Positions 327 to 33,324 of a stretch of DNA of 64,000 bases are shown here, one piece after another (the first letter of the stretch is position 1; each line of letters opens with the position of its first letter). The DNA lies in the NCBI RefSeq assembly GCF_023055435.1, contig NW_025963813.1, forward strand, positions 3,844,001 through 3,908,000, written 5' to 3'. Source of the stretch: Haliotis rufescens (lineage: Eukaryota). The notes below the pieces were generated by a model that was given only the letters and a program-made list of their open reading frames with translations, was not told where the DNA came from and did no database searches. A program made the position numbers and the translations under genes.

Positions 327-991
327 TTAACCATGGTGGCCACCGCCTCCATGGCCACCTCCTCCATGGCCGCCGCCACCGTGACCACCTCCGTGGCCAC
401 CACCACCGTGGCCGCCGCCGCCGCCACCATGACCACCTCCGTGGCCGCCACCTCCATGTCCGCCGCCACCATGACCCCCACCACCTTTGCCGCCTCCTCC
501 GTGGCCGCCACCCCCTTTGCCACCGCCTCCTTTTCCGCCACCTCCTCCGTGGCCGCCACCTCCTTTGCCACCGCCTCCTTTGCCACCACCTCCTTTGCCA
601 CCGCCTCCTTTGCCACCGCCTCCTTTGCCACCGCCTCCTTTGCCACCACCTCCTTTTCCACCGCCTCCATGTCCTCCTCCGCCTCCTTTGCCGCCACCCC
701 CTCCGTGGCCACCATAGGCAGAGCCAAAGAAGGCTGTGAACACTAGAAAGGAGAACAGTGCATCTGTAGTTAAATGTCTTTAAAGAACAACGCAAGAATA
801 TAGTTTTCAACCTCATAATGTTGCCAATTACCTTTTGTACGCTCTTTAAGTCACGTTGCTGTAGAAAATAGGCAATGAATTAAAAGATAAGTGAATTTAT
901 CAGTCCACATTTCAATAGAACTCACACAGCTCACGTTTGAAAGTTTGAACTTACCCAAGGCCACAACGAGTGCAATTTTATAGAGCTGCAT
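327..991 (-). CDS. Secreted Gly/His/Lys-only repeat protein, copy 1 (150 aa; exons 991-955, 742-327)
   Basis: Exon 1 ATG..TTG G|GTAAGT (MQLYKIALVVAL). 212-bp intron with polypyrimidine CTAG acceptor. The phase-1 join gives MQLYKIALVVALVFTAFFGSAYG (signal peptide) then GH(GGGGK/GGGGH)n..HHG*. TATA, Inr and AATAAA are correctly placed. Confidence 0.93.
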
Positions 992-1030
992 CTTCACAGT
1001 TACGTCTATCCACAGTAGAATAAACGGTGT

Positions 1031-1066
1031 GAATGACCACGTAGCAAATACACAAGGCCTTTTATA
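1031..1066 (-). promoter_or_regulatory. Core promoter: TATAAAAG (1066-1059) and Inr TCATTC (1036-1031); repeated in each unit
   Basis: Canonical TATA box ~32 nt upstream of the A of a TCAKTY initiator; ATG lies 43 nt further on. Confidence 0.8.
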
Positions 1067-2814
1067 CAAATGGATAAGGAAATCAGGACACTATGAATCG
1101 AAATACTCCCAATGGAGAAAGAAAGAGAACAAGTTCTATTTTGACTTTTTCCTCAACATGTATTTGTAAACTAACACCAGATTATATAATATCACCTTGG
1201 CATTGGAGAGTTTCATTCTTTATTATTTACGTCTTCCTGAATAACCATCAAAACATGCTGTGCATTTGTTACGTAAGGCGGCGCCCCTTGGATGTTTCTC
1301 TGTTGGATTAAATGCAAGGTGCACTGACTCATCCAATGAATTCAAAGCAAATATGACATACAAAAACAATGAATAGACGGGTCTCTATAAAATGCAAGGA
1401 CAATGATTAGCTGTAAATATCATGTTACAATAGGTCTCGTTATGCAGTTTCTTGGTCCCATCAATGACTATTGTAAAATACCTATATCTTAAATGAGCAA
1501 ACAGTAGATACTGCATGCTTTTCATTTGATGAAAATACACCGATATTTAGGGAATTACAACACGTACTACGCCTCCGTCGCCTTATATGCTGCTCGTAGC
1601 ACCACAACACATACTGTAAGTGATATCTACTCAATAATGGACACAGAAGTGACCGTGCAACCACTTATACACGAAATATATTTACACCTATCTGAGAAGC
1701 GTAGGGATAAAAGAGGGCTACAGTCTGAAAGCAGAATATGAGACCGCTCCATGTCACACATCTGAGTTGCTTTTTTCAAAGCAGTTAAAAGAACCTAGAT
1801 AATTAATTCAACTATTGTAGTCTGCATGTTTAAAATATTTCTTTGAGCTCTTTCCACACGATCGAAATCGCGTACCAATATATGCTGACCGCAGTAACCT
1901 GTAAGGGGCATACTATCTCCATCTGACTCAGCAATACAGTAAACTAAATGTAATGTCAACGGTATTACATTTGAGAAAGAGTGCTAAATGACATCCTATT
2001 ATTGTGTGCGGATAGTGTATCAATGCAGTTAGCAAACTGATAGTCAAATGGACAGGTGTGAAGTTAACTAGGTATGGTATGTAGCTACTTTAATACTATT
2101 GTAATTCTCCACAAGGTCAGAACTGCTAAAATGCAGAAACGCCTAAACGTGGACAAGAACAAGGTATTTGTGAAGCATTTGGGGACGATTATGTAGGGTT
2201 GAAACTTCTTTAAATCTTGAGACAAAACGTATTAGAGGGGAAGAGTTCTGTTTTTGACGCATACACAGTGAAGACAAAATGTTGAAATACATTAAAAGTA
2301 AAATGTACTCATAGGATAGATATATAGGTATTTTGCAATTATCAACGGAATCTGTTGAGCTAATTCTAGGGACGATGTGTATGATTTCACTAGTGGAAAC
2401 TGATATATACCATGTATTTATAAATTGGCTTTCCGACAACACAGTCAAGGCAAGGAGTGAATTATTTGCAATGTTTAATTGTTAATTACCTTTTGTATTA
2501 GGAGGATTCATATGCCAAGAATGGGACTAACACTAGCTCTCGCTGCAGCTGTTTTTGTAATCAATAGGATACGGTTCTCCGTATGTGCGTTTGTATTATA
2601 CATCATGTACCACATAGGTGATATGTGTTTCTTCTTTTAATTTGCAGGTAAGCAGTAAGTAAATACAAAGTCGAAAAGACAAATTCATTTCATGGTTTTA
2701 TTTGAAGTCGTTTCTCAAAGTTGACATTGTATAGTGTGGTGTAGTCAACGATTCTATGGCAACGATGGCATCAAATGTCCAGCATTTGATAGAAATGTGA
2801 AGAGCCTGTTGAGT

Positions 2815-3479
2815 TTAACCATGGTGGCCACCGCCTCCATGGCCACCTCCTCCATGGCCGCCGCCACCGTGACCACCTCCGTGGCCACCACCACCGTGGC
2901 CGCCGCCGCCGCCACCATGACCACCTCCGTGGCCGCCACCTCCATGTCCGCCGCCACCATGACCCCCACCACCTTTGCCGCCTCCTCCGTGGCCGCCACC
3001 CCCTTTGCCACCGCCTCCTTTTCCGCCACCTCCTCCGTGGCCGCCACCTCCTTTGCCACCGCCTCCTTTGCCACCACCTCCTTTGCCACCGCCTCCTTTG
3101 CCACCGCCTCCTTTGCCACCGCCTCCTTTGCCACCACCTCCTTTTCCACCGCCTCCATGTCCTCCTCCGCCTCCTTTGCCGCCACCCCCTCCGTGGCCAC
3201 CATAGGCAGAGCCAAAGAAGGCTGTGAACACTAGAAAGGAGAACAGTGCATCTGTAGTTAAATGTCTTTAAAGAACAACGCAAGAATATAGTTTTCAACC
3301 TCATAATGTTGCCAATTACCTTTTGTACGCTCTTTAAGTCACGTTGCTGTAGAAAATAGGCAATGAATTAAAAGATAAGTGAATTTATCAGTCCACATTT
3401 CAATAGAACTCACACAGCTCACGTTTGAAAGTTTGAACTTACCCAAGGCCACAACGAGTGCAATTTTATAGAGCTGCAT
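2815..3479 (-). CDS. Gly/His/Lys secreted protein copy 2 (150 aa; exons 3479-3443, 3230-2815)
   Basis: Same exon/intron structure as copy 1. Confidence 0.92.
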
Positions 3480-5302
3480 CTTCACAGTTACGTCTATCCA
3501 CAGTAGAATAAACGGTGTGAATGACCATGTAGCAAATACACAAGGCCTTTTATACAAATGGATAAGGAAATCAGGACACTATGAATCGAAATACTCCCAA
3601 TGGAGAAAGAAAGAGAACAAGTTCTATTTTGACTTTTTCCTCAACATGTATTTGTAAACTAACACCAGATTATATAGTATCACCTTGGCATTGGAGAGTT
3701 TCATTCTTTATTATTTACGTCTTCCTGAATAACCATCAAAACATGCTGTGCATTTGTTACGTAAGGCGGCGCCCCTTGGATGTTTCTCTGTTGGATTAAA
3801 TGCAAGGTGCACTGACTCATCCAATGAATTCAAAGCAAATATGACATACAAAAACAATGAATAGACGGGTCTCTATAAAATGCAAGAACAATGATTAGCT
3901 GTAAATATCATGTTACAATAGGTCTCGTTATGCAGTTTCTTGGTCCCATCAATGACTATTGTAAAATACCTATATCTTAAATGAGCAAACAGTAGATACT
4001 GCATGCTTTTCATTTGATGAAAATACACCGATATTTAGGGAATTACAACACGTACTACGCCTCCGTCGCCTTATATGCTGCTCGTAGCACCACAACACAT
4101 ACTGTAAGTAATATCTACTCAATAATGGACACAGAAGTGACCGTGCAACCACTTATACAGGAAATATATTTACACCTATCTGAGAAGCGTAGGGATAAAA
4201 GAGGGCTACAGTCTGAAAGCAGAATATGAGACCGCTCCATGTCACACATCTGAGTTGCTTTTTTCAAAGCAGTTAAAAGAACCTAGATAATTAATTCAAC
4301 TATTGTAGTCTGCATGTTTAAAATATTTCTTTGAGCTCTTTCCACACGATCGAAATCGCGTACCAATATATGCTGACCGCAGTAACCTGTAAGGGGCATA
4401 CTATCTCCATCTGACTCAGCAATACAGTAAACTAAATGTAATGTCAACGGTATTACATTTGAGAAAGAGTGCTAAATGACATCCTATTATTGTGTGCGGA
4501 TAGTGTATCAATGCAGTTAGCAAACTGATAGTCAAATGGACAGGTGTGAAGTTAACTAGGTATGGTATGTAGCTACTTTAATACTATTGTAATTCTCCAC
4601 AAGGTCAGAACTGCTAAAATGCAGAAACGCCTAAACGTGGACAAGAACAAGGTATTTGTGAAGCATTTGGGGACGATTATGTAGGGTTGAAACTTCTTTA
4701 AATCTTGAGACAAAACGTATTAGAGGGGAAGAGTTCTGTTTTTGACGCATACACAGTGAAGACAAAATGTTGAAATACATTAAAAGTAAAATGTACTCAT
4801 AGGATAGATATATAGGTATTTTGCAATTATCAACGGAATCTGTTGAGCTAATTCTAGGGACGACGTGTATGATTTCACTAGTGGAAACTGATATATACCA
4901 TGTTTTTATAAATTCGCTTTCCGACAACACAGTCAAGGCAAGGAGTGAATTATTTGCAATGTTTAATTGTAAATTACCTTTTGTATTAGGAGGATTCATA
5001 TGCCAAGAATGGGACTAAAACTAGCTCTCGCTGCAGCTGTTTTTGTAATCAATAGGATACGGTTCTCCGTATGTGCGTTTGTATTATACATCATGTACCA
5101 CATAGGTGATATGTGTTTCTTCTTTTAATTTGCAGGTAAGCAGTAAGTAAATACAAAGTCGAAAAGACATATTCATTTCATGGTTTTATTTGAAGTCGTT
5201 TCTCAAAGTTGACATTGTATAGTGTGGTGTAGTCAACGATTCTATGGCAACGATGGCATCAAATGTCCAGCATTTGATAGAAATGTGAAGAGCCTGTTGA
5301 GT

Positions 5303-5952
5303 TTAACCATGGTGGCCACCGCCTCCATGGCCACCTCCTCCATGGCCGCCGCCACCGTGACCACCTCCGTGGCCACCACCACCGTGGCCGCCGCCGCCGC
5401 CACCATGACCACCTCCGTGGCCGCCACCTCCATGTCCGCCGCCACCATGACCCCCACCACCTTTGCCGCCTCCTCCGTGGCCGCCACCCCCTTTGCCACC
5501 GCGTCCTTTTCCGCCACCTCCTCCGTGGCCGCCACCTCCTTTGCCACCGCCTCCTTTGCCACCACCTCCTTTGCCACCGCCTCCTTTGCCACCGCCTCCT
5601 TTGCCACCACCTCCTTTTCCACCGCCTCCATGTCCTCCTCCGCCTCCTTTGCCGCCACCCCCTCCGTGGCCACCATAGGCAGAGCCAAAGAAGGCTGTGA
5701 ACACTAGAAAGGAGAACAGTGCATCTGTAGTTAAATGTCTTTAAAGAACAACGCAAGAATATAGTTTTCAACCTCATAATGTTGCCAATTACCTTTTGTA
5801 CGCTCTTTAAGTCACGTTGCTGTAGAAAATAGGCAATGAATTAAAAGATAAGTGAATTTATCAGTCCACATTTCAATAGAACTCACACAGCTCACGTTTG
5901 AAAGTTTGAACTTACCCAAGGCCACAACGAGTGCAATTTTATAGAGCTGCAT
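5303..5952 (-). CDS. Gly/His/Lys secreted protein copy 3 (145 aa; one GGGGK fewer, one G>R; exons 5952-5916, 5703-5303)
   Basis: Same structure; 15-bp in-frame deletion. Confidence 0.92.
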
Positions 5953-7775
5953 CTTCACAGTTACGTCTATCCACAGTAGAATAAACGGTGTGAATGACCA
6001 TGTAGCAAATACACAAGGCCTTTTATACAAATGGATAAGGAAATCAGGACACTATGAATCGAAATACTCCCAATGGAGAAAGAAAGAGAACAAGTTCTAT
6101 TTTGACTTTTTCCTCAACATGTATTTGTAAACTAACACCAGATTATATAATATCACCTTGGCATTGGAGAGTTTCATTCTTTATTATTTACGTCTTCCTG
6201 AATAACCATCAAAACATGCTGTGCATTTGTTACGTAAGGCGGCGCCCCTTGGATGTTTCTCTTTTGGATTAAATGCAAGGTGCACTGACTCATCCAATGA
6301 ATTCAAAGCAAATATGATATACAAAAACAATGAATAGACGGGTCTCTATAAAATGCAAGAACAATGATTAGCTGTAAATATCATGTTACAATAGGTCTCG
6401 TTATGCAGTTTCTTGGTCCCATCAATGACTATTGTAAAATACCTATATCTTAAATGAGCAAACAGTAGATACTGCATGCTTTTCATTTGATGAAAATACA
6501 CCGATATTTAGGGAATTACAACACGTACTACGTCTCCGTCGCCTTATATGCTGCTCGTAGCACCACAACACATACTGTAAGTAATATCTACTCAATAATG
6601 GACACAGAAGTGACCGTGCAACCACTTATACAGGAAATATATTTACACCTATCTGAGAAGCGTAGGGATAAAAGAGGGCTACAGTCTGAAAGCAGAATAT
6701 GAGACCGCTCCATGTCACACATCTGAGTTGCTTTTTTCAAAGCAGTTAAAAGAACCTAGATAATTAATTCAACTATTGTAGTCTGCATGTTTAAAATATT
6801 TCTTTGAGCTCTTTCCACACGATCGAAATCGCGTACCAATATATGCTGACCGCAGTAACCTGTAAGGGGCATACTATCTCCATCTGACTCAGCAATACAG
6901 TAAACTAAATGTAATGTCAACGGTATTACATTTAAGAAAGAGTGCTAAATGACATCCTATTATGGTGTGCGGATAGTGTATCAATGCAGTTAGCAAACTG
7001 ATAGTCAAATTGACAGGTGTGAAGTTAACTAGGTATGGTATGTTGCTACTTTAATACTATTGTAATTCTCCACAAGGTCAGAACTGCTAAAATGCAGAAA
7101 CGCCTAAACGTGGACAAGAACAAGGTAGATGTGAAGCATTTGGGGACGATTATGTAGGGTTGAACATTTTTTAAATCTTGAGACAAAACGTATTAGAGGG
7201 GAAGAGTTCTGTTTTTGACGCATACACAGTGAAGACAAAATGTTGAAATACATTAAAAGCAAAATGTTCTCATAGGATAGATATAAAGGTATTTTGCAAT
7301 TATCAACGGAATCTGTTGAGCTAATTCTAGGGACGATGTGTATGATTTCACTAGTGGAAACTGATTTATACCATGTATTTATAAATTGGCTTTCCGACAA
7401 CACAGTCAAGGCAAGGAGTGAATTATTTGCAATGTTTAATTGTAAATTACCTTTTGTATTAGGAGGATTCATATGCCAAGAATGGGACTAAAACTAGCTC
7501 TCGCTGCAGCTGTTTTTGTAATCAATAGGATACGGTTCTCCGTATGTGCGTTTGTATTATACATCATGTACCACATAGGTGATATGTGTTTCTTCTTTTA
7601 ATTTGCAGGTAAGCAGTAAGTAAATACAAAGTCGAAAAGACATATTCATTTCATGGTTTTATTTGAAGTCGTTTCTCAAAGTTGACATTGTATAGTGTGG
7701 TGTAGTCAACGATTCTATGGCAACGATGGCATCAAATGTCCAGCATTTGATAGAAATGTGAAGAGCCTGTTGAGT

Positions 7776-8440
7776 TTAACCATGGTGGCCACCGCCTCCA
7801 TGGCCACCTCCTCCATGGCCGCCGCCACCGTGACCACCTCCGTGGCCACCACCACCGTGGCCGCCGCCGCCGCCACCATGACCACCTCCGTGGCCGCCAC
7901 CTCCATGTCCGCCGCCACCATGACCCCCACCACCTTTGCCGCCTCCTCCGTGGCCGCCACCCCCTTTGCCACCGCCTCCTTTTCCGCCACCTCCTCCGTG
8001 GCCGCCACCTCCTTTGCCACCGCCTCCTTTGCCACCACCTCCTTTGCCACCGCCTCCTTTGCCACCGCCTCCTTTGCCACCGCCTCCTTTGCCACCACCT
8101 CCTTTTCCACCGCCTCCATGTCCTCCTCCGCCTCCTTTGCCGCCACCCCCTCCGTGGCCACCATAGGCAGAGCCAAAGAAGGCTGTGAACACTAGAAAGG
8201 AGAACAGTGCATCTGTAGTTAAATGTCTTTAAAGAACAACGCAAGAATATAGTTTTCAACCTCATAATGTTGCCAATTACCTTTTGTACGCTCTTTAAGT
8301 CACGTTGCTGTAGAAAATAGGCAATGAATTAAAAGATAAGTGAATTTATCAGTCCACATTTCAATAGAACTCACACAGCTCACGTTTGAAAGTTTGAACT
8401 TACCCAAGGCCACAACGAGTGCAATTTTATAGAGCTGCAT
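7776..8440 (-). CDS. Gly/His/Lys secreted protein copy 4 (150 aa; exons 8440-8404, 8191-7776)
   Basis: Same structure as copy 1. Confidence 0.92.
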
Positions 8441-10263
8441 CTTCACAGTTACGTCTATCCACAGTAGAATAAACGGTGTGAATGACCATGTAGCAAATAC
8501 ACAAGGCCTTTTATACAAATGGATAAGGAAATCAGGACACTATGAATCGAAATACTCCCAATGGAGAAAGAAAGAGAACAAGTTCTATTTTGACTTTTTC
8601 CTCAACATGTATTTGTAAACTAACACCAGATTATATAATATCACCTTGGCATTGGAGAGTTTCATTCTTTATTATTTACGTCTTCCTGAATAACCATCAA
8701 AACATGCTGTGCATTTGTTACGTAAGGCGGCGCCCCTTGGATGTTTCTCTGTTGGATTAAATGCAAGGTGCACTGACTCATCCAATGAATTCAAAGCAAA
8801 TATGACATACAAAAACAATGAATAGACGGGTCTCTATAAAATGCAAGAACAATGATTAGCTGTAAATATCATGTTACAATAGGTCTCGTTATGCAGTTTC
8901 TTGGTCCCATCAATGACTATTGTAAAATACCTATATCTTAAATGAGCAAACAGTAGATACTGCATGCTTTTCATTTGATGAAAATACACCGATATTTAGG
9001 GAATTACAACACGTACTACGTCTCCGTCGCCTTATATGCTGCTCGTAGCACCACAACACATACTGTAAGTAATATCTACTCAATAATGGACACAGAAGTG
9101 ACCGTGCAACCACTTATACAGGAAATATATTTACACCTATCTGAGAAGCGTAGGGATAAAAGAGGGCTACAGTCTGAAAGCAGAATATGAGACCGCTCCA
9201 TGTCACACATCTGAGTTGCTTTTTTCAAAGCAGTTAAAAGAACCTAGATAATTAATTCAACTATTGTAGTCTGCATGTTTAAAATATTTCTTTGAGCTCT
9301 TTCCACACGATCGAAATCGCGTACCAATATATGCTGACCGCAGTAACCTGTAAGGGGCATACTATCTCCATCTGACTCAGCAATACAGTAAACTAAATGT
9401 AATGTCAACGGTATTACATTTAAGAAAGAGTGCTAAATGACATCCTATTATGGTGTGCGGATAGTGTATCAATGCAGTTAGCAAACTGATAGTCAAATGG
9501 ACAGGTGTGAAGTTAACTAGGTATGGTATGTTGCTACTTTAATACTATTGTAATTCTCCACAAGGTCAGAACTGCTAAAATGCAGAAACGCCTAAACGTG
9601 GACAAGAACAAGGTAGATGTGAAGCATTTGGGGACGATTATGTAGGGTTGAACATTTTTTAAATCTTGAGACAAAACGTATTAGAGGGGAAGAGTTCTGT
9701 TTTTGACGCATACACAGTGAAGACAAAATGTTGAAATACATTAAAAGCAAAATGTTCTCATAGGATAGATATAAAGGTATTTTGCAATTATCAACGGAAT
9801 CTGTTGAGCTAATTCTAGGGACGATGTGTATGATTTCACTAGTGGAAACTGATATATACCATGTATTTATAAATTGGCTTTCCGACAACACAGTCAAGGC
9901 AAGGAGTGAATTATTTGCAATGTTTAATTGTAAATTACCTTTTGTATTAGGAGGATTCATATGCCAAGAATGGGACTAAAACTAGCTCTCGCTGCAGCTG
10001 TTTTTGTAATCAATAGGATACGGTTCTCCGTATGTGCGTTTGTATTATACATCATGTACCACATAGGTGATATGTGTTTCTTCTTTTAATTTGCAGGTAA
10101 GCAGTAAGTAAATACAAAGTCGAAAAGACATATTCATTTCATGGTTTTATTTGAAGTCGTTTCTCAAAGTTGACATTGTATAGTGTGGTGTAGTCAACGA
10201 TTCTATGGCAACGATGGCATCAAATGTCCAGCATTTGATAGAAATGTGAAGAGCCTGTTGAGT

Positions 10264-10928
10264 TTAACCATGGTGGCCACCGCCTCCATGGCCACCTCCT
10301 CCATGGCCGCCGCCACCGTGACCACCTCCGTGGCCACCACCACCGTGGCCGCCGCCGCCGCCACCATGACCACCTCCGTGGCCGCCACCTCCATGTCCGC
10401 CGCCACCATGACCCCCACCACCTTTGCCGCCTCCTCCGTGGCCGCCACCCCCTTTGCCACCGCCTCCTTTTCCGCCACCTCCTCCGTGGCCGCCACCTCC
10501 TTTGCCACCGCCTCCTTTGCCACCACCTCCTTTGCCACCGCCTCCTTTGCCACCGCCTCCTTTGCCACCGCCTCCTTTGCCACCACCTCCTTTTCCACCG
10601 CCTCCATGTCCTCCTCCGCCTCCTTTGCCGCCACCCCCTCCGTGGCCACCATAGGCAGAGCCAAAGAAGGCTGTGAACACTAGAAAGGAGAACAGTGCAT
10701 CTGTAGTTAAATGTCTTTAAAGAACAACGCAAGAATATAGTTTTCAACCTCATAATGTTGCCAATTACCTTTTGTACGCTCTTTAAGTCACGTTGATGTA
10801 GAAAATAGGCAATGAATTAAAAGATAAGTGAATTTATCAGTCCACATTTCAATAGAACTCACACAGCTCACGTTTGAAAGTTTGAACTTACCCAAGGCCA
10901 CAACGAGTGCAATTTTATAGAGCTGCAT
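10264..10928 (-). CDS. Gly/His/Lys secreted protein copy 5 (150 aa; exons 10928-10892, 10679-10264)
   Basis: Same structure as copy 1. Confidence 0.92.
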
Positions 10929-12751
10929 CTTCACAGTTACGTCTATCCACAGTAGAATAAACGGTGTGAATGACCATGTAGCAAATACACAAGGCCTTTT
11001 ATACAAATGGATAAGGAAATCAGGACACTATGAATCGAAATACTCCCAATGGAGAAAGAAAGAGAACAAGTTCTATTTTGACTTTTTCCTCAACATGTAT
11101 TTGTAAACTAACACCAGATTATATAATATCACCTTGGCATTGGAGAGTTTCATTCTTTATTATTTACGTCTTCCTGAATAACCATCAAAACATGCTGTGC
11201 ATTTGTTACGTAAGGCGGCGCCCCTTGGATGTTTCTCTTTTGGATTAAATGCAAGGTGCACTGACTCATCCAATGAATTCAAAGCAAATATGATATACAA
11301 AAACAATGAATAGACGGGTCTCTATAAAATGCAAGAACAATGATTAGCTGTAAATATCATGTTACAATAGGTCTCGTTATGCAGTTTCTTGGTCCCATCA
11401 ATGACTATTGTAAAATACCTATATCTTAAATGAGCAAACAGTAGATACTGCATGCTTTTCATTTGATGAAAATACACCGATATTTAGGGAATTACAACAC
11501 GTACTACGTCTCCGTCGCCTTATATGCTGCTCGTAGCACCACAACACATACTGTAAGTAATATCTACTCAATAATGGACACAGAAGTGACCGTGCAACCA
11601 CTTATACAGGAAATATATTTACACCTATCTGAGAAGCGTAGGGATAAAAGGGGGCTACAGTCTGAAAGCAGAATATGAGACCGCTCCATGTCACACATCT
11701 GAGTTGCTTTTTTCAAAGCAGTTAAAAGAACCTAGATAATTAATTCAACTATTGTAGTCTGCATGTTTAAAATATTTCTTTGAGCTCTTTCCACACGATC
11801 GAAATCGCGTACCAATATATGCTGACCGCAGTAACCTGTAAGGGGCATACTATCTCCATCTGACTCAGCAATACAGTAAACTAAATGTAATGTCAACGGT
11901 ATTACATTTAAGAAAGAGTGCTAAATGACATCCTATTATGGTGTGCGGATAGTGTATCAATGCAGTTAGCAAACTGATAGTCAAATTGACAGGTGTGAAG
12001 TTAACTAGGTATGGTATGTTGCTACTTTAATACTATTGTAATTCTCCACAAGGTCAGAACTGCTAAAATGCAGAAACGCCTAAACGTGGACAAGAACAAG
12101 GTAGATGTGAAGCATTTGGGGACGATTATGTAGGGTTGAACATTTTTTAAATCTTGAGACAAAACGTATTAGAGGGGAAGAGTTCTGTTTTTGACGCATA
12201 CACAGTGAAGACAAAATGTTGAAATACATTAAAAGCAAAATGTTCTCATAGGATAGATATAAAGGTATTTTGCAATTATCAACGGAATCTGTTGAGCTAA
12301 TTCTAGGGACGATGTGTATGATTTCACTAGTGGAAACTGATTTATACCATGTATTTATAAATTGGCTTTCCGACAACACAGTCAAGGCAAGGAGTGAATT
12401 ATTTGCAATGTTTAATTGTAAATTACCTTTTGTATTAGGAGGATTCATATGCCAAGAATGGGACTAAAACTAGCTCTCGCTGCAGCTGTTTTTGTAATCA
12501 ATAGGATACGGTTCTCCGTATGTGCGTTTGTATTATACATCATGTACCACATAGGTGATATGTGTTTCTTCTTTTAATTTGCAGGTAAGCAGTAAGTAAA
12601 TACAAAGTCGAAAAGACATATTCATTTCATGGTTTTATTTGAAGTCGTTTCTCAAAGTTGACATTGTATAGTGTGGTGTAGTCAACGATTCTATGGCAAC
12701 GATGGCATCAAATGTCCAGCATTTGATAGAAATGTGAAGAGCCTGTTGAGT

Positions 12752-13416
12752 TTAACCATGGTGGCCACCGCCTCCATGGCCACCTCCTCCATGGCCGCCG
12801 CCACCGTGACCACCTCCGTGGCCACCACCACCGTGGCCGCCGCCGCCGCCACCATGACCACCTCCGTGGCCGCCACCTCCATGTCCGCCGCCACCATGAC
12901 CCCCACCACCTTTGCCGCCTCCTCCGTGGCCGCCACCCCCTTTGCCACCGCCTCCTTTTCCGCCACCTCCTCCGTGGCCGCCACCTCCTTTGCCACCGCC
13001 TCCTTTGCCACCACCTCCTTTGCCACCGCCTCCTTTGCCACCGCCTCCTTTGCCACCGCCTCCTTTGCCACCACCTCCTTTTCCACCGCCTCCATGTCCT
13101 CCTCCGCCTCCTTTGCCGCCACCCCCTCCGTGGCCACCATAGGCAGAGCCAAAGAAGGCTGTGAACACTAGAAAGGAGAACAGTGCATCTGTAGTTAAAT
13201 GTCTTTAAAGAACAACGCAAGAATATAGTTTTCAACCTCATAATGTTGCCAATTACCTTTTGTACGCTCTTTAAGTCACGTTGATGTAGAAAATAGGCAA
13301 TGAATTAAAAGATAAGTGAATTTATCAGTCCACATTTCAATAGAACTCACACAGCTCACGTTTGAAAGTTTGAACTTACCCAAGGCCACAACGAGTGCAA
13401 TTTTATAGAGCTGCAT
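12752..13416 (-). CDS. Gly/His/Lys secreted protein copy 6 (150 aa; exons 13416-13380, 13167-12752)
   Basis: Same structure as copy 1. Confidence 0.92.
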
Positions 13417-22706: not shown

Positions 22707-23386
22707 TTAACCATGGTGGCCACCGCCTCCATGGCCACCTCCTCCATGGCCGCCGCCACCGTGACCACCTCCGTGGCCACCACCACCGTGGCCGCCGCCG
22801 CCGCCACCATGACCACCTCCGTGGCCGCCACCTCCATGTCCGCCGCCACCATGACCCCCACCACCTTTGCCGCCTCCTCCGTGGCCGCCACCCCCTTTGC
22901 CACCGCCTCCTTTTCCGCCACCTCCTCCGTGGCCGCCACCTCCTTTGCCACCGCCTCCTTTGCCACCACCTCCTTTGCCACCGCCTCCTTTGCCACCGCC
23001 TCCTTTGCCACCGCCTCCTTTGCCACCGCCTCCTTTGCCACCACCTCCTTTTCCACCGCCTCCATGTCCTCCTCCGCCTCCTTTGCCGCCACCCCCTCCG
23101 TGGCCACCATAGGCAGAGCCAAAGAAGGCTGTGAACACTAGAAAGGAGAACAGTGCATCTGTAGTTAAATGTCTTTAAAGAACAACGCAAGAATATAGTT
23201 TTCAACCTCATAATGTTGCCAATTACCTTTTGTACGCTCTTTAAGTCACGTTGCTGTAGAAAATAGGCAATGAATTAAAAGATAAGTGAATTTATCAGTC
23301 CACATTTCAATAGAACTCACACAGCTCACGTTTGAAAGTTTGAACTTACCCAAGGCCACAACGAGTGCAATTTTATAGAGCTGCAT
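22707..23386 (-). CDS. Gly/His/Lys secreted protein copy 10 (155 aa, +1 GGGGK; exons 23386-23350, 23137-22707)
   Basis: Same structure; 15-bp in-frame insertion. Confidence 0.92.
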
Positions 23387-25209
23387 CTTCACAGTTACGT
23401 CTATCCACAGTAGAATAAACGGTGTGAATGACCATGTAGCAAATACACAAGGCCTTTTATACAAATGGATAAGGAAATCAGGACACTATGAATCGAAATA
23501 CTCCCAATGGAGAAAGAAAGAGAACAAGTTCTATTTTGACTTTTTCCTCAACATGTATTTGTAAACTAACACCAGATTATATAATATCACCTTGGCATTG
23601 GAGAGTTTCATTCTTTATTATTTACGTCTTCCTGAATAACCATCAAAACATGCTGTGCATTTGTTACGTAAGGCGGCGCCCCTTGGATGTTTCTCTGTTG
23701 GATTAAATGCAAGGTGCACTGACTCATCCAATGAATTCAAAGCAAATATGACATACAAAAACAATGAATAGACGGGTCTCTATAAAATGCAAGAACAATG
23801 ATTAGCTGTAAATATCATGTTACAATAGGTCTCGTTATGCAGTTTCTTGGTCCCATCAATGACTATTGTAAAATACCTATATCTTAAATGAGCAAACAGT
23901 AGATACTGCATGCTTTTCATTTGATGAAAATACACCGATATTTAGGGAATTACAACACGTACTACGCCTCCGTCGCCTTATATGCTGCTCGTAGCACCAC
24001 AACACATACTGTAAGTAATATCTACTCAATAATGGACACAGAAGTGACCGTGCAACCACTTATACAGGAAATATATTTACACCTATCTGAGAAGCGTAGG
24101 GATAAAAGAGGGCTACAGTCTGAAAGCAGAATATGAGACCGCTCCATGTCACACATCTGAGTTGCTTTTTTCAAAGCAGTTAAAAGAACCTAGATAATTA
24201 ATTCAACTATTGTAGTCTGCATGTTTAAAATATTTCTTTGAGCTCTTTCCACACGATCGAAATCGCGTACCAATATATGCTGACCACAGTAACCTGTAAG
24301 GGGCATACTATCTCCATCTGACTCAGCAATACAGTAAACTAAATGTAATGTCAACGGTATTACATTTAAGAAAGAGTGCTAAATGACATCCTATTATGGT
24401 GTGCGGATAGTGTATCAATGCAGTTAGCAAACTGATAGTAAAATGGACAGGTGTGAAGTTAACTAGGTATGGTATGTTGCTACTTTAATACTATTGTAAT
24501 TCTCCACAAGGTCAGAACTGCTAAAATGCAGAAACGCCTAAACGTGGACAAGAACAAGGTAGATGTGAAGCATTTGGGGACGATTATGTAGGGTTGAAAA
24601 TTTTTTAAATCTTGAGACAAAACGTATTAGAGGGGAAGAGTTCTGTTTTTGACGCATACACAGTGAAGACAAAATGTTGAAATACATTAAAAGCAAAATG
24701 TTCTCATAGGATAGATATAAAGGTATTTTGCAATTATCAACGGAATCTGTTGAGCTAATTCTAGGGACGATGTGTATGATTTCACTAGTGGAAACTGATA
24801 TATACCATGTATTTATAAATTGGCTTTCCGACAACACAGTCAAGGCAAGGAGTGAATTATTTGCAATGTTTAATTGTAAATTACCTTTTGTATTGGGAGG
24901 ATTCATATGCCAAGAATGGGACTAAAACTAGCTCTCGCTGCAGCTGTTTTTGTAATCAATAGGATACGGTTCTCCGTATGTGCGTTTGTATTATACATCA
25001 TGTACCACATAGGTGATATGTGTTTCTTCTTTTAATTTGCAGGTAAGCAGTAAGTAAATACAAAGTCGAAAAGACATATTCATTTCATGGTTTTATTTGA
25101 AGTCGTTTCTCAAAGTTGACATTGTATAGTGTGGTGTAGTCAACGATTCTATGGCAACGATGGCATCAAATGTCCAGCATTTGATAGAAATGTGAAGAGC
25201 CTGTTGAGT

Positions 25210-25874
25210 TTAACCATGGTGGCCACCGCCTCCATGGCCACCTCCTCCATGGCCGCCGCCACCGTGACCACCTCCGTGGCCACCACCACCGTGGCCGCCG
25301 CCGCCGCCACCATGACCACCTCCGTGGCCGCCACCTCCATGTCCGCCGCCACCATGACCCCCACCACCTTTGCCGCCTCCTCCGTGGCCGCCACCCCCTT
25401 TGCCACCGCCTCCTTTTCCGCCACCTCCTCCGTGGCCGCCACCTCCTTTGCCACCGCCTCCTTTGCCACCACCTCCTTTGCCACCGCCTCCTTTGCCACC
25501 GCCTCCTTTGCCACCGCCTCCTTTGCCACCACCTCCTTTGCCACCGCCTCCATGTCCTCCTCCGCCTCCTTTGCCGCCACCCCCTCCGTGGCCACCATAG
25601 GCAGAGCCAAAGAAGGCTGTGAACACTAGAAAGGAGAACAGTGCATCTGTAGTTAAATGTCTTTAAAGAACAACGCAAGAATATAGTTTTCAACCTCATA
25701 ATGTTGCCAATTACCTTTTGTACGCTCTTTAAGTCACGTTGCTGTAGAAAATAGGCAATGAATTAAAAGATAAGTGAATTTATCAGTCCACATTTCAATA
25801 GAACTCACACAGCTCACGTTTGAAAGTTTGAACTTACCCAAGGCCACAACGAGTGCAATTTTATAGAGCTGCAT
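25210..25874 (-). CDS. Gly/His/Lys secreted protein copy 11 (150 aa; exons 25874-25838, 25625-25210)
   Basis: Same structure as copy 1. Confidence 0.92.
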
Positions 25875-27698
25875 CTTCACAGTTACGTCTATCCACAGTA
25901 GAATAAACGGTGTGAATGACCATGTAGCAAATACACAAGGCCTTTTATACAAATGGATAAGGAAATCAGGACACTATGAATCGAAATACTCCCAATGGAG
26001 AAAGAAAGAGAACAAGTTCTATTTTGACTTTTTCCTCAACATGTATTTGTAAACTAACACCAGATTATATAATATCACCTTGGCATTGGAGAGTTTCATT
26101 CTTTATTATTTACGTCTTCCTGAATAACCATCAAAACATGCTGTGCATTTGTTACGTAAGGCGGCGCCCCTTGGATGTTTCTCTGTTGGATTAAATGCAA
26201 GGTGCACTGACTCATCCAATGAATTCAAAGCAAATATGACATACAAAAACAATGAATAGACGGGTCTCTATAAAATGCAAGAACAATGATTAGCTGTAAA
26301 TATCATGTTACAATAGGTCTCGTTATGCAGTTTCTTGGTCCCATCAATGACTATTGTAAAATACCTATATCTTAAATGAGCAAACAGTAGATACTGCATG
26401 CTTTTCATTTGATGAAAATACACCGATATTTAGGGAATTACAACACGTACTACGCCTCCGTCGCCTTATATGCTGCTCGTAGCACCACAACACATACTGT
26501 AAGTAATATCTACTCAATAATGGACACAGAAGTGACCGTGCAACCACTTATACAGGAAATATATTTACACCTATCTGAGAAGCGTAGGGATAAAAGAGGG
26601 CTACAGTCTGAAAGCAGAATATGAGACCGCTCCATGTCACACATCTGAGTTGCTTTTTTCAAAGCAGTTAAAAGAACCTAGATAATTAATTCAACTATTG
26701 TAGTCTGCATGTTTAAAATATTTCTTTGAGCTCTTTCCACACGATCGAAATCGCGTACCAATATATGCTGACCGCAGTAACCTGTAAGGGGCATACTATC
26801 TCCATCTGACTCAGCAATACAGTAAACTAAATGTAATGTCAACGGTATTACATTTAAGAAAGAGTGCTAAATGATATCCTATTATGGTGTGCGGATAGTG
26901 TATCAATGCAGTTAGCAAACTGATAGTCAAATGGACAGGTGTGAAGTTAACTAGGTATGGTATGTTGCTACTTTAATACTATTGTAATTCTCCACAAGGT
27001 CAGAACTGCTAAAATGCAGAAACGCCTAAACGTGGACAAGAACAAGGTAGATGTGAAGCATTTGGGGACGATTATGTAGGGTTGAACATTTTTTAAATCT
27101 TGAGACAAAACGTATTATAGGGGAAGAGTTCTGTTTTTGACGCATACACAGTGAAGACAAAATGTTGAAATACATTAAAAGCAAAATGTTCTCATAGGAT
27201 AGATATAAAGGTATTTTGCAATTATCAACGGAATCTGTTGAGCTAATTCTAGGGACGAAGTGTATGATTTCACTAGTGGAAACTGATATATACCATGTAT
27301 TTATAAATTGGCTTTCCGACAACACAGTCAAGGCAAGGAGTGAATTATTTGCAATGTTTAATTGTAAAAATTACCTTTTGTATTAGGAGGATTCATATGC
27401 CAAGAATGGGACTAAAACTAGCTCTCGCTGCAGCTGTTTTTGTAATCAATAGGATACGGTTCTCCGTATGTGCGTTTGTATTATACATCATGTACCACAT
27501 AGGTGATATGTGTTTCTTCTTTTAATTTGCAGGTAAGCAGTAAGTAAATACAAGTCGAAAAGACATATTCATTTCATGGTTTTATTTGAAGTCGTTTCTC
27601 AAAGTTGACATTGTATAGTGTGGTGTAGTCAACGATTCTATGGCAACGATGGCATCAAATGTCCAGCATTTGATAGAAATGTGAAGAGCCTGTTGAGT

Positions 27699-28363
27699 TT
27701 AACCATGGTGGCCACCGCCTCCATGGCCACCTCCTCCATGGCCGCCGCCACCGTGACCACCTCCGTGGCCACCACCACCGTGGCCGCCGCCGCCGCCACC
27801 ATGACCACCTCCGTGGCCGCCACCTCCATGTCCGCCGCCACCATGACCCCCACCACCTTTGCCGCCTCCTCCGTGGCCGCCACCCCCTTTGCCACCGCCT
27901 CCTTTTCCGCCACCTCCTCCGTGGCCGCCACCTCCTTTGCCACCGCCTCCTTTGCCACCACCTCCTTTGCCACCGCCTCCTTTGCCACCGCCTCCTTTGC
28001 CACCGCCTCCTTTGCCACCACCTCCTTTTCCACCGCCTCCATGTCCTCCTCCGCCTCCTTTGCCGCCACCCCCTCCGTGGCCACCATAGGCAGAGCCAAA
28101 GAAGGCTGTGAACACTAGAAAGGAGAACAGTGCATCTGTAGTTAAATGTCTTTAAAGAACAACGCAAGAATATAGTTTTCAACCTCATAATGTTGCCAAT
28201 TACCTTTTGTACGCTCTTTAAGTCACGTTGCTGTAGAAAATAGGCAATGAATTAAAAGATGAGTGAATTTATCAGTCCACATTTCAATAGAACTCACACA
28301 GTTCACGTTTGAAAGTTTGAACTTACCCAAGGCCACAACGAGTGCAATTTTATAGAGCTGCAT
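27699..28363 (-). CDS. Gly/His/Lys secreted protein copy 12 (150 aa; exons 28363-28327, 28114-27699)
   Basis: Same structure as copy 1. Confidence 0.92.
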
Positions 28364-30186
28364 CTTCACAGTTACGTCTATCCACAGTAGAATAAACGGT
28401 GTGAATGACCATGTAGCAAATACACAAGGCCTTTTATACAAATGGATAAGGAAATCAGGACACTATGAATCGAAATACTCCCAATGGAGAAAGAAAGAGA
28501 ACAAGTTCTATTTTGACTTTTTCCTCAACATGTATTTGTAAACTAACACCAGATTATATAATATCACCTTGGCATTGGAGAGTTTCATTCTTTATTATTT
28601 ACGTCTTCCTGAATAACCATCAAAACATGCTGTGCATTTGTTACGTAAGGCGGCGCCCCTTGGATGTTTCTCTGTTGGATTAAATGCAAGGTGCACTGAC
28701 TCATCCAATGAATTCAAAGCAAATATGACATACAAAAACAATGAATAGACGGGTCTCTATAAAATGCAAGAACAATGATTAGCTGTAAATATCATGTTAC
28801 AATAGGTCTCGTTATGCAGTTTCTTGGTCCCATCAATGACTATTGTAAAATACCTATATCTTAAATGAGCAAACAGTAGATACTGCATGCTTTTCATTTG
28901 ATGAAAATACACCGATATTTAGGGAATTACAACACGTACTACGCCTCCGTCGCCTTATATGCTGCTCGTAGCACCACAACACATACTGTAAGTAATATCT
29001 ACTCAATAATGGACACAGAAGTGACCGTGCAACCACTTATACAGGAAATATATTTACACCTTTCTGAGAAGCGTAGGGATAAAAGAGGGCTACAGTCTGA
29101 AAGCAGAATATGAGACCGCTCCATGTCACACATCTGAGTTGCTTTTTTCAAAGCAGTTAAAAGAACCTAGATAATTAATTCAACTATTGTAGTCTGCATG
29201 TTTAAAATATTTCTTTGAGCTCTTTCCACACGATCGAAATCGCGTACCAATATATGCTGACCGCAGTAACCTGTAAGGGGCATACTATCTCCATCTGACT
29301 CAGCAATACAGTAAACTAAATGTAATGTCAACGGTATTACATTTAAGAAAGAGTGCTAAATGACATCCTATTATGGTGTGCGGATAGTGTATCAATGCAG
29401 TTAGCAAACTGATAGTAAAATGGACAGGTGTGAAGTTAACTAGGTATGGTATGTTGCTACTTTAATACTATTGTAATTCTCCACAAGGTCAGAACTGCTA
29501 AAATGCAGAAACGCCTAAACGTGGACAAGAACAAGGTAGATGTGAAGCATTTGGGGACGATTATGTAGGGTTGAAAATTTTTTAAATCTTGAGACAAAAC
29601 GTATTAGAGGGGAAGAGTTCTGTTTTTGACGCATACACAGTGAAGACAAAATGTTGAAATACATTAAAAGCAAAATGTTCTCATAGGATAGATATAAAGG
29701 TATTTTGCAATTATCAACGGAATCTGTTGAGCTAATTCTAGGGACGATGTGTATGATTTCACTAGTGGAAACTGATATATACCATGTATTTATAAATTGG
29801 CTTTCCGACAACACAGTCAAGGCAAGGAGTGAATTATTTGCAATGTTTAATTGTAAATTACCTTTTGTATTGGGAGGATTCATATGCCAAGAATGGGACT
29901 AAAACTAGCTCTCGCTGCAGCTGTTTTTGTAATCAATAGGATACGGTTCTCCGTATGTGCGTTTGTATTATACATCATGTACCACATAGGTGATATGTGT
30001 TTCTTCTTTTAATTTGCAGGTAAGCAGTAAGTAAATACAAAGTCGAAAAGACATATTCATTTCATGGTTTTATTTGAAGTCGTTTCTCAAAGTTGACATT
30101 GTATAGTGTGGTGTAGTCAACGATTCTATGGCAACGATGGCATCAAATGTCCAGCATTTGATAGAAATGTGAAGAGCCTGTTGAGT

Positions 30187-30836
30187 TTAACCATGGTGGC
30201 CACCGCCTCCATGGCCACCTCCTCCATGGCCGCCGCCACCGTGACCACCACCGTGGCCGCCGCCGCCGCCACCATGACCACCTCCGTGGCCGCCACCTCC
30301 ATGTCCGCCGCCACCATGACCCCCACCACCTTTGCCGCCTCCTCCGTGGCCGCCACCCCCTTTGCCACCGCCTCCTTTTCCGCCACCTCCTCCGTGGCCG
30401 CCACCTCCTTTGCCACCGCCTCCTTTGCCACCACCTCCTTTGCCACCGCCTCCTTTGCCACCGCCTCCTTTGCCACCGCCTCCTTTGCCACCACATCCTT
30501 TTCCACCGCCTCCATGTCCTCCTCCGCCTCCTTTGCCGCCACCCCCTCCGTGGCCACCATAGGCAGAGCCAAAGAAGGCTGTGAACACTAGAAAGGAGAA
30601 CAGTGCATCTGTAGTTAAATGTCTTTAAAGAACAACGCAAGAATATAGTTTTCAACCTCATAATGTTGCCAATTACCTTTTGTACGCTCTTTAAGTCACG
30701 TTGCTGTAGAAAATAGGCAATGAATTAAAAGATAAGTGAATTTATCAGTCCACATTTCAATAGAACTCACGCAGCTCACGTTTGAAAGTTTGAACTTACC
30801 CAAGGCCACAACGAGTGCAATTTTATAGAGCTGCAT
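30187..30836 (-). CDS. Gly/His/Lys secreted protein copy 13 (145 aa; one GGGGH fewer, one G>C; exons 30836-30800, 30587-30187)
   Basis: Same structure; 15-bp in-frame deletion. Confidence 0.92.
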
Positions 30837-32659
30837 CTTCACAGTTACGTCTATCCACAGTAGAATAAACGGTGTGAATGACCATGTAGCAAATACACAA
30901 GGCCTTTTATACAAATGGATAAGGAAATCAGGACACTATGAATCGAAATACTCCCAATGGAGAAAGAAAGAGAACAAGTTCTATTTTGACTTTTTCCTCA
31001 ACATGTATTTGTAAACTAACACCAGATTATATAATATCACCTTGGCATTGGAGAGTTTCATTCTTTATTATTTACGTCTTCCTGAATAACCATCAAAACA
31101 TGCTGTGCATTTGTTACGTAAGGCGGCGCCCCTTGGATGTTTCTCTGTTGGATTAAATGCAAGGTGCACTGACTCATCCAATGAATTCAAAGCAAATATG
31201 ACATACAAAAACAATGAATAGACGGGTCTCTATAAAATGCAAGAACAATGATTAGCTGTAAATATCATGTTACAATAGGTCTCGTTATGCAGTTTCTTGG
31301 TCCCATCAATGACTATTGTAAAATACCTATATCTTAAATGAGCAAACAGTAGATACTGCATGCTTTTCATTTGATGAAAATACACCGATATTTAGGGAAT
31401 TACAACACGTACTACGCCTCCGTCGCCTTATATGCTGCTCGTAGCACCACAACACATACTGTAAGTAATATCTACTCAATAATGGACACAGAAGTGACCG
31501 TGCAACCACTTATACAGGAAATATATTTACACCTATCTGAGAAGCGTAGGGATAAAAGAGGGCTACAGTCTGAAAGCAGAATATGAGACCGCTCCATGTC
31601 ACACATCTGAGTTGCTTTTTTCAAAGCAGTTAAAAGAACCTAGATAATTAATTCAACTATTGTAGTCTGCATGTTTAAAATATTTCTTTGAGCTCTTTCC
31701 ACACGATCGAAATCGCGTACCAATATATGCTGACCACAGTAACCTGTAAGGGGCATACTATCTCCATCTGACTCAGCAATACAGTAAACTAAATGTAATG
31801 TCAACGGTATTACATTTAAGAAAGAGTGCTAAATGACATCCTATTATGGTGTGCGGATAGTGTATCAATGCAGTTAGCAAACTGATAGTAAAATGGACAG
31901 GTGTGAAGTTAACTAGGTATGGTATGTTGCTACTTTAATACTATTGTAATTCTCCACAAGGTCAGAACTGCTAAAATGCAGAAACGCCTAAACGTGGACA
32001 AGAACAAGGTAGATGTGAAGCATTTGGGGACGATTATGTAGGGTTGAAAATTTTTTAAATCTTGAGACAAAACGTATTAGAGGGGAAGAGTTCTGTTTTT
32101 GACGCATACACAGTGAAGACAAAATGTTGAAATACATTAAAAGCAAAATGTTCTCATAGGATAGATATAAAGGTATTTTGCAATTATCAACGGAATCTGT
32201 TGAGCTAATTCTAGGGACGATGTGTATGATTTCACTAGTGGAAACTGATATATACCATGTATTTATAAATTGGCTTTCCGACAACACAGTCAAGGCAAGG
32301 AGTGAATTATTTGCAATGTTTAATTGTAAATTACCTTTTGTATTGGGAGGATTCATATGCCAAGAATGGGACTAAAACTAGCTCTCGCTGCAGCTGTTTT
32401 TGTAATCAATAGGATACGGTTCTCCGTATGTGCGTTTGTATTATACATCATGTACCACATAGGTGATATGTGTTTCTTCTTTTAATTTGCAGGTAAGCAG
32501 TAAGTAAATACAAAGTCGAAAAGACATATTCATTTCATGGTTTTATTTGAAGTCGTTTCTCAAAGTTGACATTGTATAGTGTGGTGTAGTCAACGATTCT
32601 ATGGCAACGATGGCATCAAATGTCCAGCATTTGATAGAAATGTGAAGAGCCTGTTGAGT

Positions 32660-33324
32660 TTAACCATGGTGGCCACCGCCTCCATGGCCACCTCCTCCAT
32701 GGCCGCCGCCACCGTGACCACCTCCGTGGCCACCACCACCGTGGCCGCCGCCGCCGCCACCATGACCACCTCCGTGGCCGCCACCTCCATGTCCGCCGCC
32801 ACCATGACCCCCACCACCTTTGCCGCCTCCTCCGTGGCCGCCACCCCCTTTGCCACCGCCTCCTTTTCCGCCACCTCCTCCGTGGCCGCCACCTCCTTTG
32901 CCACCGCCTCCTTTGCCACCACCTCCTTTGCCACCGCCTCCTTTGCCACCGCCTCCTTTGCCACCGCCTCCTTTGCCACCACCTCCTTTGCCACCGCCTC
33001 CATGTCCTCCTCCGCCTCCTTTGCCGCCACCCCCTCCGTGGCCACCATAGGCAGAGCCAAAGAAGGCTGTGAACACTAGAAAGGAGAACAGTGCATCTGT
33101 AGTTAAATGTCTTTAAAGAACAACGCAAGAATATAGTTTTCAACCTCATAATGTTGCCAATTACCTTTTGTACGCTCTTTAAGTCACGTTGCTGTAGAAA
33201 ATAGGCAATGAATTAAAAGATAAGTGAATTTATCAGTCCACATTTCAATAGAACTCACACAGCTCACGTTTGAAAGTTTGAACTTACCCAAGGCCACAAC
33301 GAGTGCAATTTTATAGAGCTGCAT
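32660..33324 (-). CDS. Gly/His/Lys secreted protein copy 14 (150 aa; exons 33324-33288, 33075-32660)
   Basis: Same structure as copy 1. Confidence 0.92.

Follow-up and report, generated by a model that had tools for sequence, protein, structure and literature searches.

Tandem gene arrays for predicted secreted glycine/histidine/lysine chains in the red abalone, Haliotis rufescens

A gene array within the window

The DNA examined here is a stretch of 64,000 nucleotides (nt) from the red abalone, Haliotis rufescens (positions 3,844,001 to 3,908,000 of contig NW_025963813.1, assembly GCF_023055435.1), which at its full 64-kb length is called the window below. As seen in Table 1, its minus strand carries 14 complete and intact head-to-tail copies of a small two-exon gene and one truncated remnant, arranged in units of 2.49 kb and referred to as array A. 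The gene is predicted to encode a secreted chain of only three amino acids, glycine (Gly, G), histidine (His, H) and lysine (Lys, K). A GGN-rich block of 15-nt and 45-nt repeats, detected with Tandem Repeats Finder, recurs every ~2,488 bases from position 337 to 35,506. The start word of exon 1 (ATG plus the next 17 bases) was found 14 times on the minus strand, at 991, 3479, 5952 and onward to 33324, with a period of 2473-2503 bases that is mostly 2488.

All 14 copies share the same structure, consisting of a 37-nt exon 1, a GTAAGT donor, a 212-nt intron ending in TTTCTAG, and an exon 2 that runs to a TAA stop. The joined reading frames are 145-155 residues long, and neither stop codons nor frameshifts were found in any of them (0 of 14). 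An identical protein of 150 residues is encoded by 10 of the 14 copies; the others vary by whole pentads or by single residues. A TATA box lies 75 nt before the ATG in every copy, with a sequence resembling an initiator (Inr), TCATTCA, ~33 nt downstream of it. The word around the polyadenylation signal AATAAA occurs 16 times. Open reading frames (ORFs) rich in proline or in alanine, threonine and serine also cover the repeat on the plus strand. These were rejected as genes, being complement or frame shadows of the GGN codons without gene signals.

The common product consists of a signal peptide of 23 residues followed by a chain of 127 residues (G101 H15 K11) with a mass of 9.25 kDa and an isoelectric point of 11. 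Gly makes up 80% of the chain, and the remaining residues are spaced exactly five apart in 18 of 25 intervals. Lys is concentrated in the N-terminal half (K9/H3) and His in the C-terminal half (H12/K2). The signal peptide has a Lys-containing n-region, a hydrophobic core of 13 residues (mean Kyte-Doolittle value 2.9), and small residues at -3 and -1. Cleavage before Gly-His is favoured, since it is the sole candidate with small residues at these two positions in all five paralogous types described below. The computed net charge of the chain is +10 at pH 8.1 and +25 at pH 5. The joined two-exon protein was used for description only, and exon 2 served as the input for structure prediction and as the query in homology searches. 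Single-sequence AlphaFold2 prediction of exon 2 gave a mean predicted local distance difference test score of 41 and no secondary structure; the chain is thus predicted to be disordered, without a stable fold. The C-terminal Gly was considered as an amidation signal. This is weak on its own in a chain with so much Gly, and it was not used as evidence; the notable feature of the chain end is a conserved HHG rather than the final Gly.

An earlier note on this DNA, made from the letters alone, had joined 991-955 to 742-327 in copy 1, and the exon bounds are exactly those. The TATA box, Inr and AATAAA that it described for every unit were recovered (the last after each gene), as was the intactness of all 14 full copies, and its reading of the signal peptide, of the chain composition and of pentads with Lys first and His last was confirmed from the sequence. 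Its count of at least 14 tandem copies holds for the window and is an underestimate, as the array extends beyond the left end of the window and comprises 26 copies in all.

At the upstream edge of the array, the truncated 15th copy is an array-edge remnant. An element resembling a short interspersed nuclear element (SINE) sits exactly between this remnant and a lone fragment of the 3' untranslated region (3'UTR), with a short TACTTACTGC duplication on each side. A second, interrupted copy of the SINE-like element was observed at 36985-37429, and the two copies are 88-91% alike. No tRNA was found in the element with ARAGORN.

Table 1. Positions in the window of array A and of the features of its gene units
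Feature	Positions	Strand
Array A, part within the window: 14 complete 2.49-kb units, truncated unit, and 3'UTR fragment at the upstream edge	1..35830	-
Copy 1, exon 1: 37 nt, 12 signal-peptide codons starting with ATG; donor GTAAGT at 954-949	955..991	-
Copy 1, intron: 212 nt, GT...AG, phase 1, within the signal peptide	743..954	-
Copy 1, exon 2: remainder of signal peptide, 127-residue Gly/His/Lys chain, TAA stop at 329-327	327..742	-
Copy 1, TATA box GTATAAAAGGCC; in each of the 14 copies, with conservation in sister arrays	1056..1067	-
Copy 1, 5'UTR and promoter-proximal sequence (~420 bp): conservation of 65-75% between A and B, unalignable further upstream	992..1410	-
Copy 1, 19-nt palindromic 3'UTR motif TCAAATGCTGGACATTTGA, ~30 nt past the stop; in every unit	283..301	-
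Copy 1, polyadenylation signal AATAAA; conservation between arrays stops just beyond	209..214	-
Gene copy 2, ATG to stop, 150 residues, intact	2815..3479	-
Gene copy 3, 145 residues (one pentad fewer), intact	5303..5952	-
Gene copy 4, 150 residues, intact	7776..8440	-
Gene copy 5, 150 residues, intact	10264..10928	-
Gene copy 6, 150 residues, intact	12752..13416	-
Gene copy 7, 151 residues, intact	15240..15907	-
Gene copy 8, 150 residues, intact	17731..18395	-
Gene copy 9, 150 residues, intact	20219..20883	-
Gene copy 10, 155 residues (one extra Lys pentad), intact	22707..23386	-
Gene copy 11, 150 residues, intact	25210..25874	-
Gene copy 12, 150 residues, intact	27699..28363	-
Gene copy 13, 145 residues, intact	30187..30836	-
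Gene copy 14, 150 residues, intact; most upstream complete copy	32660..33324	-
Truncated 15th copy: part of exon 2 (last signal-peptide codons through stop) and 3'UTR; without promoter, exon 1 and intron	35120..35512	-
SINE-like element adjoining the truncated copy and marking the upstream edge of the array	35522..35685	.
Lone 3'UTR fragment of the gene unit, beyond the SINE-like element	35686..35830	

Sister arrays, selection and the rest of the window

Genome-wide counts cover the red abalone assembly of 1,334,454,214 bases in 615 pieces. Egg-lysin exons of abalone (Pfam PF01303) are present in it; over 34 residues one of them matches the red abalone lysin of PDB 1LIS without a difference, and its likeness to entry 3LYN is clearly lower. 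Lysin is a protein that diverges quickly between species. Searches by DNA, by a pattern for exon 1 and by a pattern for exon 2 each gave 61 copies for arrays A and B together, and every one of them lies on the minus strand of scaffold C35. Array A comprises 26 copies (C35:3,816,426-3,877,433), of which 25 are intact genes, and its right half lies within the window. Array B, 1.87 Mb away, has 35 copies in units of 2,292 bp, all of them intact (35/35). Its chain of 88 residues (G70 K12 H6; predicted mass ~6.37 kDa; computed net charge +11 at pH 8.1) is shorter and richer in Lys than that of array A. Between them lies array C (C35:5.46-5.55 Mb), with 29 copies in units of 3,088 bp and a His-rich chain of 115 residues (G86 H26 K3). 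Arrays D and E were found on two other scaffolds, with 38 copies at C47:372275-475187 and 37 copies at C246:6042224-6141650. They encode pure Gly/His chains, such as G75 H18, predicted to be near neutral at pH 8 and accounting for ~75 of the family's copies. The family total is therefore ~165 genes in five arrays (26+35+29+38+37). Arrays D and E both run to a scaffold end in orientations compatible with one array of 75 or more copies, so that they may be a single array broken by the assembly, in which case the true copy number is higher. Left of the window, a single array A copy (C35:3820272-3821026) has a valine (Val) to glutamate (Glu) change at position 10 of the signal peptide and has lost ~760 bp of its spacer. 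None of the other full-length copies among these 61 is clearly damaged.

The main difference among the arrays lies in the ratio of Lys to His. Array B is Lys-rich, in array A a Lys block precedes a His block, the chain of array C is His-rich, and D and E contain His alone beside Gly. Common to all five are the 37-nt exon 1, the phase-1 intron within the signal peptide, the promoter blocks, the N-terminal GHGGGG and the C-terminal GGGHHG before the stop. The products of C, D and E are encoded with a predicted signal peptide like those of A and B, and chains across the family are 6-9 kDa. In arrays A, B, C and E the mature chains contain only Gly, His and Lys, the sole tyrosine (Tyr) being in the signal peptide at -2.

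Alignment of the A and B units reveals ~65-75% identity from about -420 to the polyadenylation signal, with the exception of the intron. Apart from its splice sites, nothing in the intron could be aligned, and the same is true of the remaining 1.2 kb of spacer. Within the coding sequence (CDS), 61 sites differ between A and B, and 47, 10 and 4 of these fall at codon positions 3, 1 and 2, respectively. Counted by codon, 43 differences are synonymous and 11 nonsynonymous. Four of the latter are conservative swaps in the signal peptide, and the rest are mostly exchanges among Gly, His and Lys, with one change of Gly to serine. The three gaps in the CDS alignment (3, 6 and 108 nt) are all multiples of three. 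By the Nei-Gojobori method, synonymous divergence (dS) is 0.76 and nonsynonymous divergence (dN) 0.075, giving a dN/dS of 0.10, or 0.14 for the signal peptide alone; alignment of the repeats may flatter these estimates, and the codon-position bias is independent of the alignment. Because the coding differences are concentrated at third positions and dN/dS is this low, the genes almost certainly encode a real, secreted protein under selection.

Within arrays, the units are nearly uniform, with 99.1% identity in A and ~98.5% in B, compared with 74% between A and B in the exon-1 region. In array A, 48 of 1,215 spacer sites are segregating against 3 of 453 CDS sites (Fisher p = 1.7e-4), and the CDS is ~nine times less variable than the spacer. 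These comparisons indicate an old family whose frame and composition are held by strong purifying selection and whose arrays are homogenised by concerted evolution, and they form the principal evidence that the spliced gene is real.

Conservation between arrays is also found in the 3'UTR. The 18-nt core of the palindromic motif TCAAATGCTGGACATTTGA is identical in all five arrays, although the surrounding 3'UTR has diverged; the first base of the 19-nt motif is C in array B. Genome-wide, 168 occurrences of the motif were counted, against 0 in a reversed control. As an RNA hairpin it would form a stem of 7-8 bp with a 5-nt loop at -5 to -6 kcal/mol, which is no better than shuffled sequences (z = -0.2 to -1.5), and this structure was rejected. 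The stem is without covariation, since the sequence never varies. An Rfam search returned only sub-threshold composition matches, including 'Prion_pknot' in the GGN repeat, which are no sign of kinship. The motif may serve to regulate the stability, localisation or translation of the mRNA.

Several other features were observed in the remainder of the window. A decayed transposase of the Tc1/mariner type lies on the minus strand at 41019-41996, with DDE_3 (E 3.5e-11) and HTH_38 in separate broken ORFs. Five minisatellites were found at 43362-44748, 45650-46022, 46699-47125, 52365-52668 and 59383-60944, with periods of 48, 22, 39/77, 22 and 24 nt, respectively. The 24-nt minisatellite has 66 copies, and long open frames on both of its strands resemble repeat shadows rather than genes. 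An ORF at 46299-46670 on the plus strand encodes a hydrophobic signal or anchor stretch and then a charged segment resembling a coiled coil, with only a weak, sub-threshold Pfam match; a secreted or membrane protein might have its first exon here. Two ORFs on the minus strand, at 55886-56596 and 63351-63704, share a near-identical C-terminal stretch of ~75 residues without a Pfam match; this stretch probably belongs to a dispersed repeat or to a mobile element of no known class. At 62453-62590 the sequence consists of 138 N.

Comparison with known proteins and gene arrays

The gene model, secretion signal, block layout and homogenised dosage array proposed in the earlier note are supported by the conservation between arrays, the low dN/dS and the low variability of the CDS. 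Its remark that the family was not recognised also stands, as neither a homologue, a Pfam family nor a paper was found. No homologue of exon 2 was detected among 5.8 billion proteins, with the whole exon or with residues 1-40, at E <= 0.001 or at E <= 10, in a search that composition correction leaves nearly blind. Among 1.84 billion representatives, the one match to exon 2 (36 bits) was an irrelevant bacterial Ala/Gly/Asp/Lys repeat protein. Pfam gave nothing for exon 2 and the ESM Atlas nothing usable, results that carry little weight given the sequence bias, and exact look-up of three exon-2 ORFs gave no match in the protein collection. For described members of the Gly-rich antimicrobial class, no sequence relationship was detected, with the composition correction nearly cancelling the score.

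The signal-peptide and junction words were found in no paper. For abalone, no such composition is described in shell proteomes of abalone, in a survey of silk-like proteins or in a chiton radula proteome, and a 2025 review of antimicrobial peptides of aquatic invertebrates has no Gly/His/Lys peptide among those of abalone. No earlier description of this gene family was found; secreted Gly-rich polymers with His or Lys are a kind already known. The abalone family would seem to work like these known polymers; because homology is undetectable, it is not filed as a member of any of their families.

In design, the closest analogue of the predicted chain is acanthoscurrin, an antimicrobial of tarantula haemocytes. 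Like the abalone chain, it is secreted, cationic, ~130 residues long and more than 70% Gly, with GGGGX pentads and interspersed Lys. A terminal Gly is converted to an amide to form its C-terminus. It differs in that X is mostly leucine, its ends carry Tyr and arginine, it is hydrophobic in character, and it has no His block; no sequence relationship is shown, and it is not known as tens of tandem copies, unlike the abalone genes. In composition, the closest analogues are the antifungal shepherins of plants and holotricin-3/tenecin-3 of beetles, together with the Gly/His proteins of worm jaws and squid beak. The antifungal peptides use a nearly two-letter Gly/His alphabet with GGH or GGGH repeats and come from secreted precursors, paralleling arrays C, D and E. 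However, they are 28-84 residues long, contain Tyr, asparagine, proline, glutamine and residues of that sort, lack a Lys block, belong to unrelated lineages and have demonstrated activity. The features shared with the Gly-rich antimicrobial class are a secreted precursor, indicated by the 23-residue signal peptide and its conservation between arrays (dN/dS 0.14), and, for the chains of arrays A and B, the composition of its cationic members (Gly above ~60%, net positive charge).

The structural proteins of hard tissue, namely Nvjp-1, the Glycera jaw protein and the His-rich proteins of squid beak, are likewise secreted, disordered and rich in Gly and His, as the abalone chains are predicted to be. 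In these proteins His serves in zinc (Zn) or copper (Cu) coordination or in catechol cross-linking, and condensation is triggered by pH or metal. They also contain Tyr, aspartate (Asp), alanine and further residues, are larger, and belong to a known hard tissue, whereas the abalone chains use three letters or fewer. As a chemical analogy only, the chain shares with the Cu(II) site of the prion octarepeat (PHGGGWGQ) a His with Gly residues after it, whose backbone amides complete that site, and the predicted amino-terminal Gly-His is shared with the Cu(II) site of the tripeptide Gly-His-Lys.

Two further comparisons come from the literature. The activity of cationic intrinsically disordered antimicrobial peptides (CIDAMPs) of hornerin is attributed to disorder and positive charge, regardless of sequence, and a 22-mer of Gly and His only was reported to be highly active against Pseudomonas aeruginosa; His-rich peptides are reported to lose activity at neutral pH (PMC6399351). 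Unlike the predicted abalone chains, the hornerin peptides are pieces of a large epidermal protein that is intracellular; they act at acid pH and low salt, and they are not products of a dedicated secreted gene. From antibacterial mucus fractions of another gastropod, the garden snail Cornu aspersum, short peptides were sequenced de novo in which GGGGH and GGGGK runs lie side by side, in stretches of the GGGGHGGGGKG- or GGGKGGGGH-type (PMC11206429). These peptides differ in also containing leucine, Val, asparagine, proline and further residues, and they are known from de novo tandem mass spectrometry alone.

The genomic layout resembles that of known dosage arrays, such as fish antifreeze arrays, mosquito cuticular-protein clusters and histone repeats, which are likewise made of head-to-tail complete small genes under concerted evolution and are read as a means of producing much of a single product in a short time. 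This likeness is one of arrangement: the products differ, and the abalone arrays encode a graded series of compositions, not one product.

Possible roles of the products

Tandem amplification for dosage is known for structural-protein and antifreeze genes. The abalone units are head to tail, each being a complete gene with its own TATA promoter and polyadenylation signal, and copies are far more alike within arrays than between them. By analogy with such systems, it is quite probable that these are dosage arrays, in which copy number serves output.

The preferred role for this output, held tentatively and at a little short of an even chance, would be that of a bulk secreted extracellular material, such as a mucus or adhesive, the jaw or radula, or the outer organic layer of the shell. 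Gly/His-rich proteins harden the jaws of Nereis and Glycera and the beak of squid through metal or catechol cross-links. The abalone product would be a bulk polyelectrolyte acting through the chemistry of its side chains, not through a fold. The Lys block would be a permanent polycation that binds polyanions, and the His block would act as a pH switch that carries charge below about pH 6.5 and none in sea water, as well as a multivalent Cu/Zn ligand. The His-Gly-Gly-Gly unit could offer copper-site chemistry of the prion-octarepeat type, and the predicted Gly-His amino terminus would resemble Gly-His-Lys. Both Lys and His could serve as nucleophiles for quinone cross-linking or tanning. Such a chain may become a cross-linkable or coacervating component of an extracellular material. 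A material role is favoured because nearly half of the genes encode chains that would be almost uncharged in sea water, and because the copies are homogenised, not diversified. A family of ~165 genes that ranges from Lys-rich to pure Gly/His fits a bulk polymer somewhat better than it does a classical antimicrobial peptide. It is possible, though rather unlikely, that the arrays form a graded polyelectrolyte series, from Gly/Lys through Gly/Lys-block-Gly/His to pure Gly/His, whose members are blended into a tunable coacervate, glue or metal-cross-linked matrix.

Several points weigh against a bulk material produced by gene dosage. The mature chain is without Tyr or 3,4-dihydroxyphenylalanine (DOPA), cysteine, Asp or any aromatic residue, unlike known jaw, beak, byssus and shell proteins, and has no Tyr or Asp of its own, residues that take part in the assembly of the structural proteins of jaw and beak. 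A mass of 6-9 kDa is small for a structural protein, and abalone is not known to have a metal-hardened tissue. Dosage is read from copy number alone, and the copy numbers of long arrays may be mis-assembled, two of the arrays ending at scaffold ends.

The main rival, which we consider rather unlikely, is host defence. In this reading the chains would be cationic and disordered peptides that act against bacteria or fungi in mucus, gut or haemocytes, perhaps in an acid gut or phagosome, and Zn/Cu and acid pH might potentiate them. The predicted products fit this role in being small, secreted and strongly cationic and in carrying His besides, and the paralogues diversify in type of charge. Nevertheless, the ~75 of 165 copies that are pure Gly/His would be almost uncharged at the pH of sea water or haemolymph, and the chains lack a hydrophobic face. 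The Gly/His-only synthetic peptide active against P. aeruginosa speaks for this role, but the same paper states that His-rich peptides lose their activity at neutral pH (PMC6399351). Similarly, the GGGGH/GGGGK-type peptides of snail mucus occur in antibacterial fractions (PMC11206429), but as de novo mass-spectrometry reads they have no gene behind them. Tens of identical, homogenised copies would also be atypical of antimicrobial families, which tend to diversify, and the 2025 review names no abalone Gly/His/Lys antimicrobial.

More improbable still is a sacrificial scavenger in the digestive or oral secretions of a kelp grazer, which would bind or covalently trap algal polyphenols (phlorotannins and their quinones) or dietary metals. 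The analogy is with mammalian salivary tannin-binding proteins (proline-rich proteins and histatins), which are also disordered, repetitive, basic and tandem-clustered; His and Lys are nucleophiles attacked by quinones, but the chain is without proline, the usual tannin-binding residue. The diet of the red abalone is mainly kelp (PMC9709998). Finally, a non-functional or selfish amplification, that is, a satellite-like repeat with a chance open frame or a set of recently dead copies, is very improbable. Likeness within an array is so high that intactness proves little, a 15-nt coding repeat changes length in frame by its nature, one copy carries the Val-to-Glu change in the core of its signal peptide, and another is truncated. 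Against these stand arrays that at a dS of 0.76 keep frame, composition, signal peptide, splice sites, TATA box and polyadenylation signal, together with the dN/dS of 0.10, the 47:10:4 codon-position bias, and a CDS less variable than the spacer within array A. An antifreeze role was set aside, as a polyproline-II bundle is not compatible with a period of five residues and the red abalone is a species of temperate water.

These genes also hold a warning for annotation. HMMER-based searches score such sequences near zero, and the signal peptide goes unseen because an intron interrupts it. After digestion with trypsin, the Lys block would be left as pentapeptides, which are too small for shotgun proteomics. 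With near-blind searches, a hidden signal peptide and such tiny tryptic peptides, the family could be abundant and yet have been missed so far.

If expressed as predicted, the chains would have one of the simplest alphabets of any natural protein, with 80% Gly and one or two kinds of side chain at five-residue spacing, and the arrays rank among the larger cases of an animal protein-coding gene amplified in tandem. They would offer a genetically defined and easily synthesised model of how charge blocks and His switches act in metal binding, phase separation, cross-linking or the killing of microbes in sea water. A graded series, if true, would let the animal mix permanently charged chains with chains switchable by pH or metal, a natural counterpart of synthetic block-copolymer design and a class of material undescribed in molluscs. 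The family may also reveal an unrecognised material or barrier defence of the abalone, which would be relevant to a species that is both declining and farmed.

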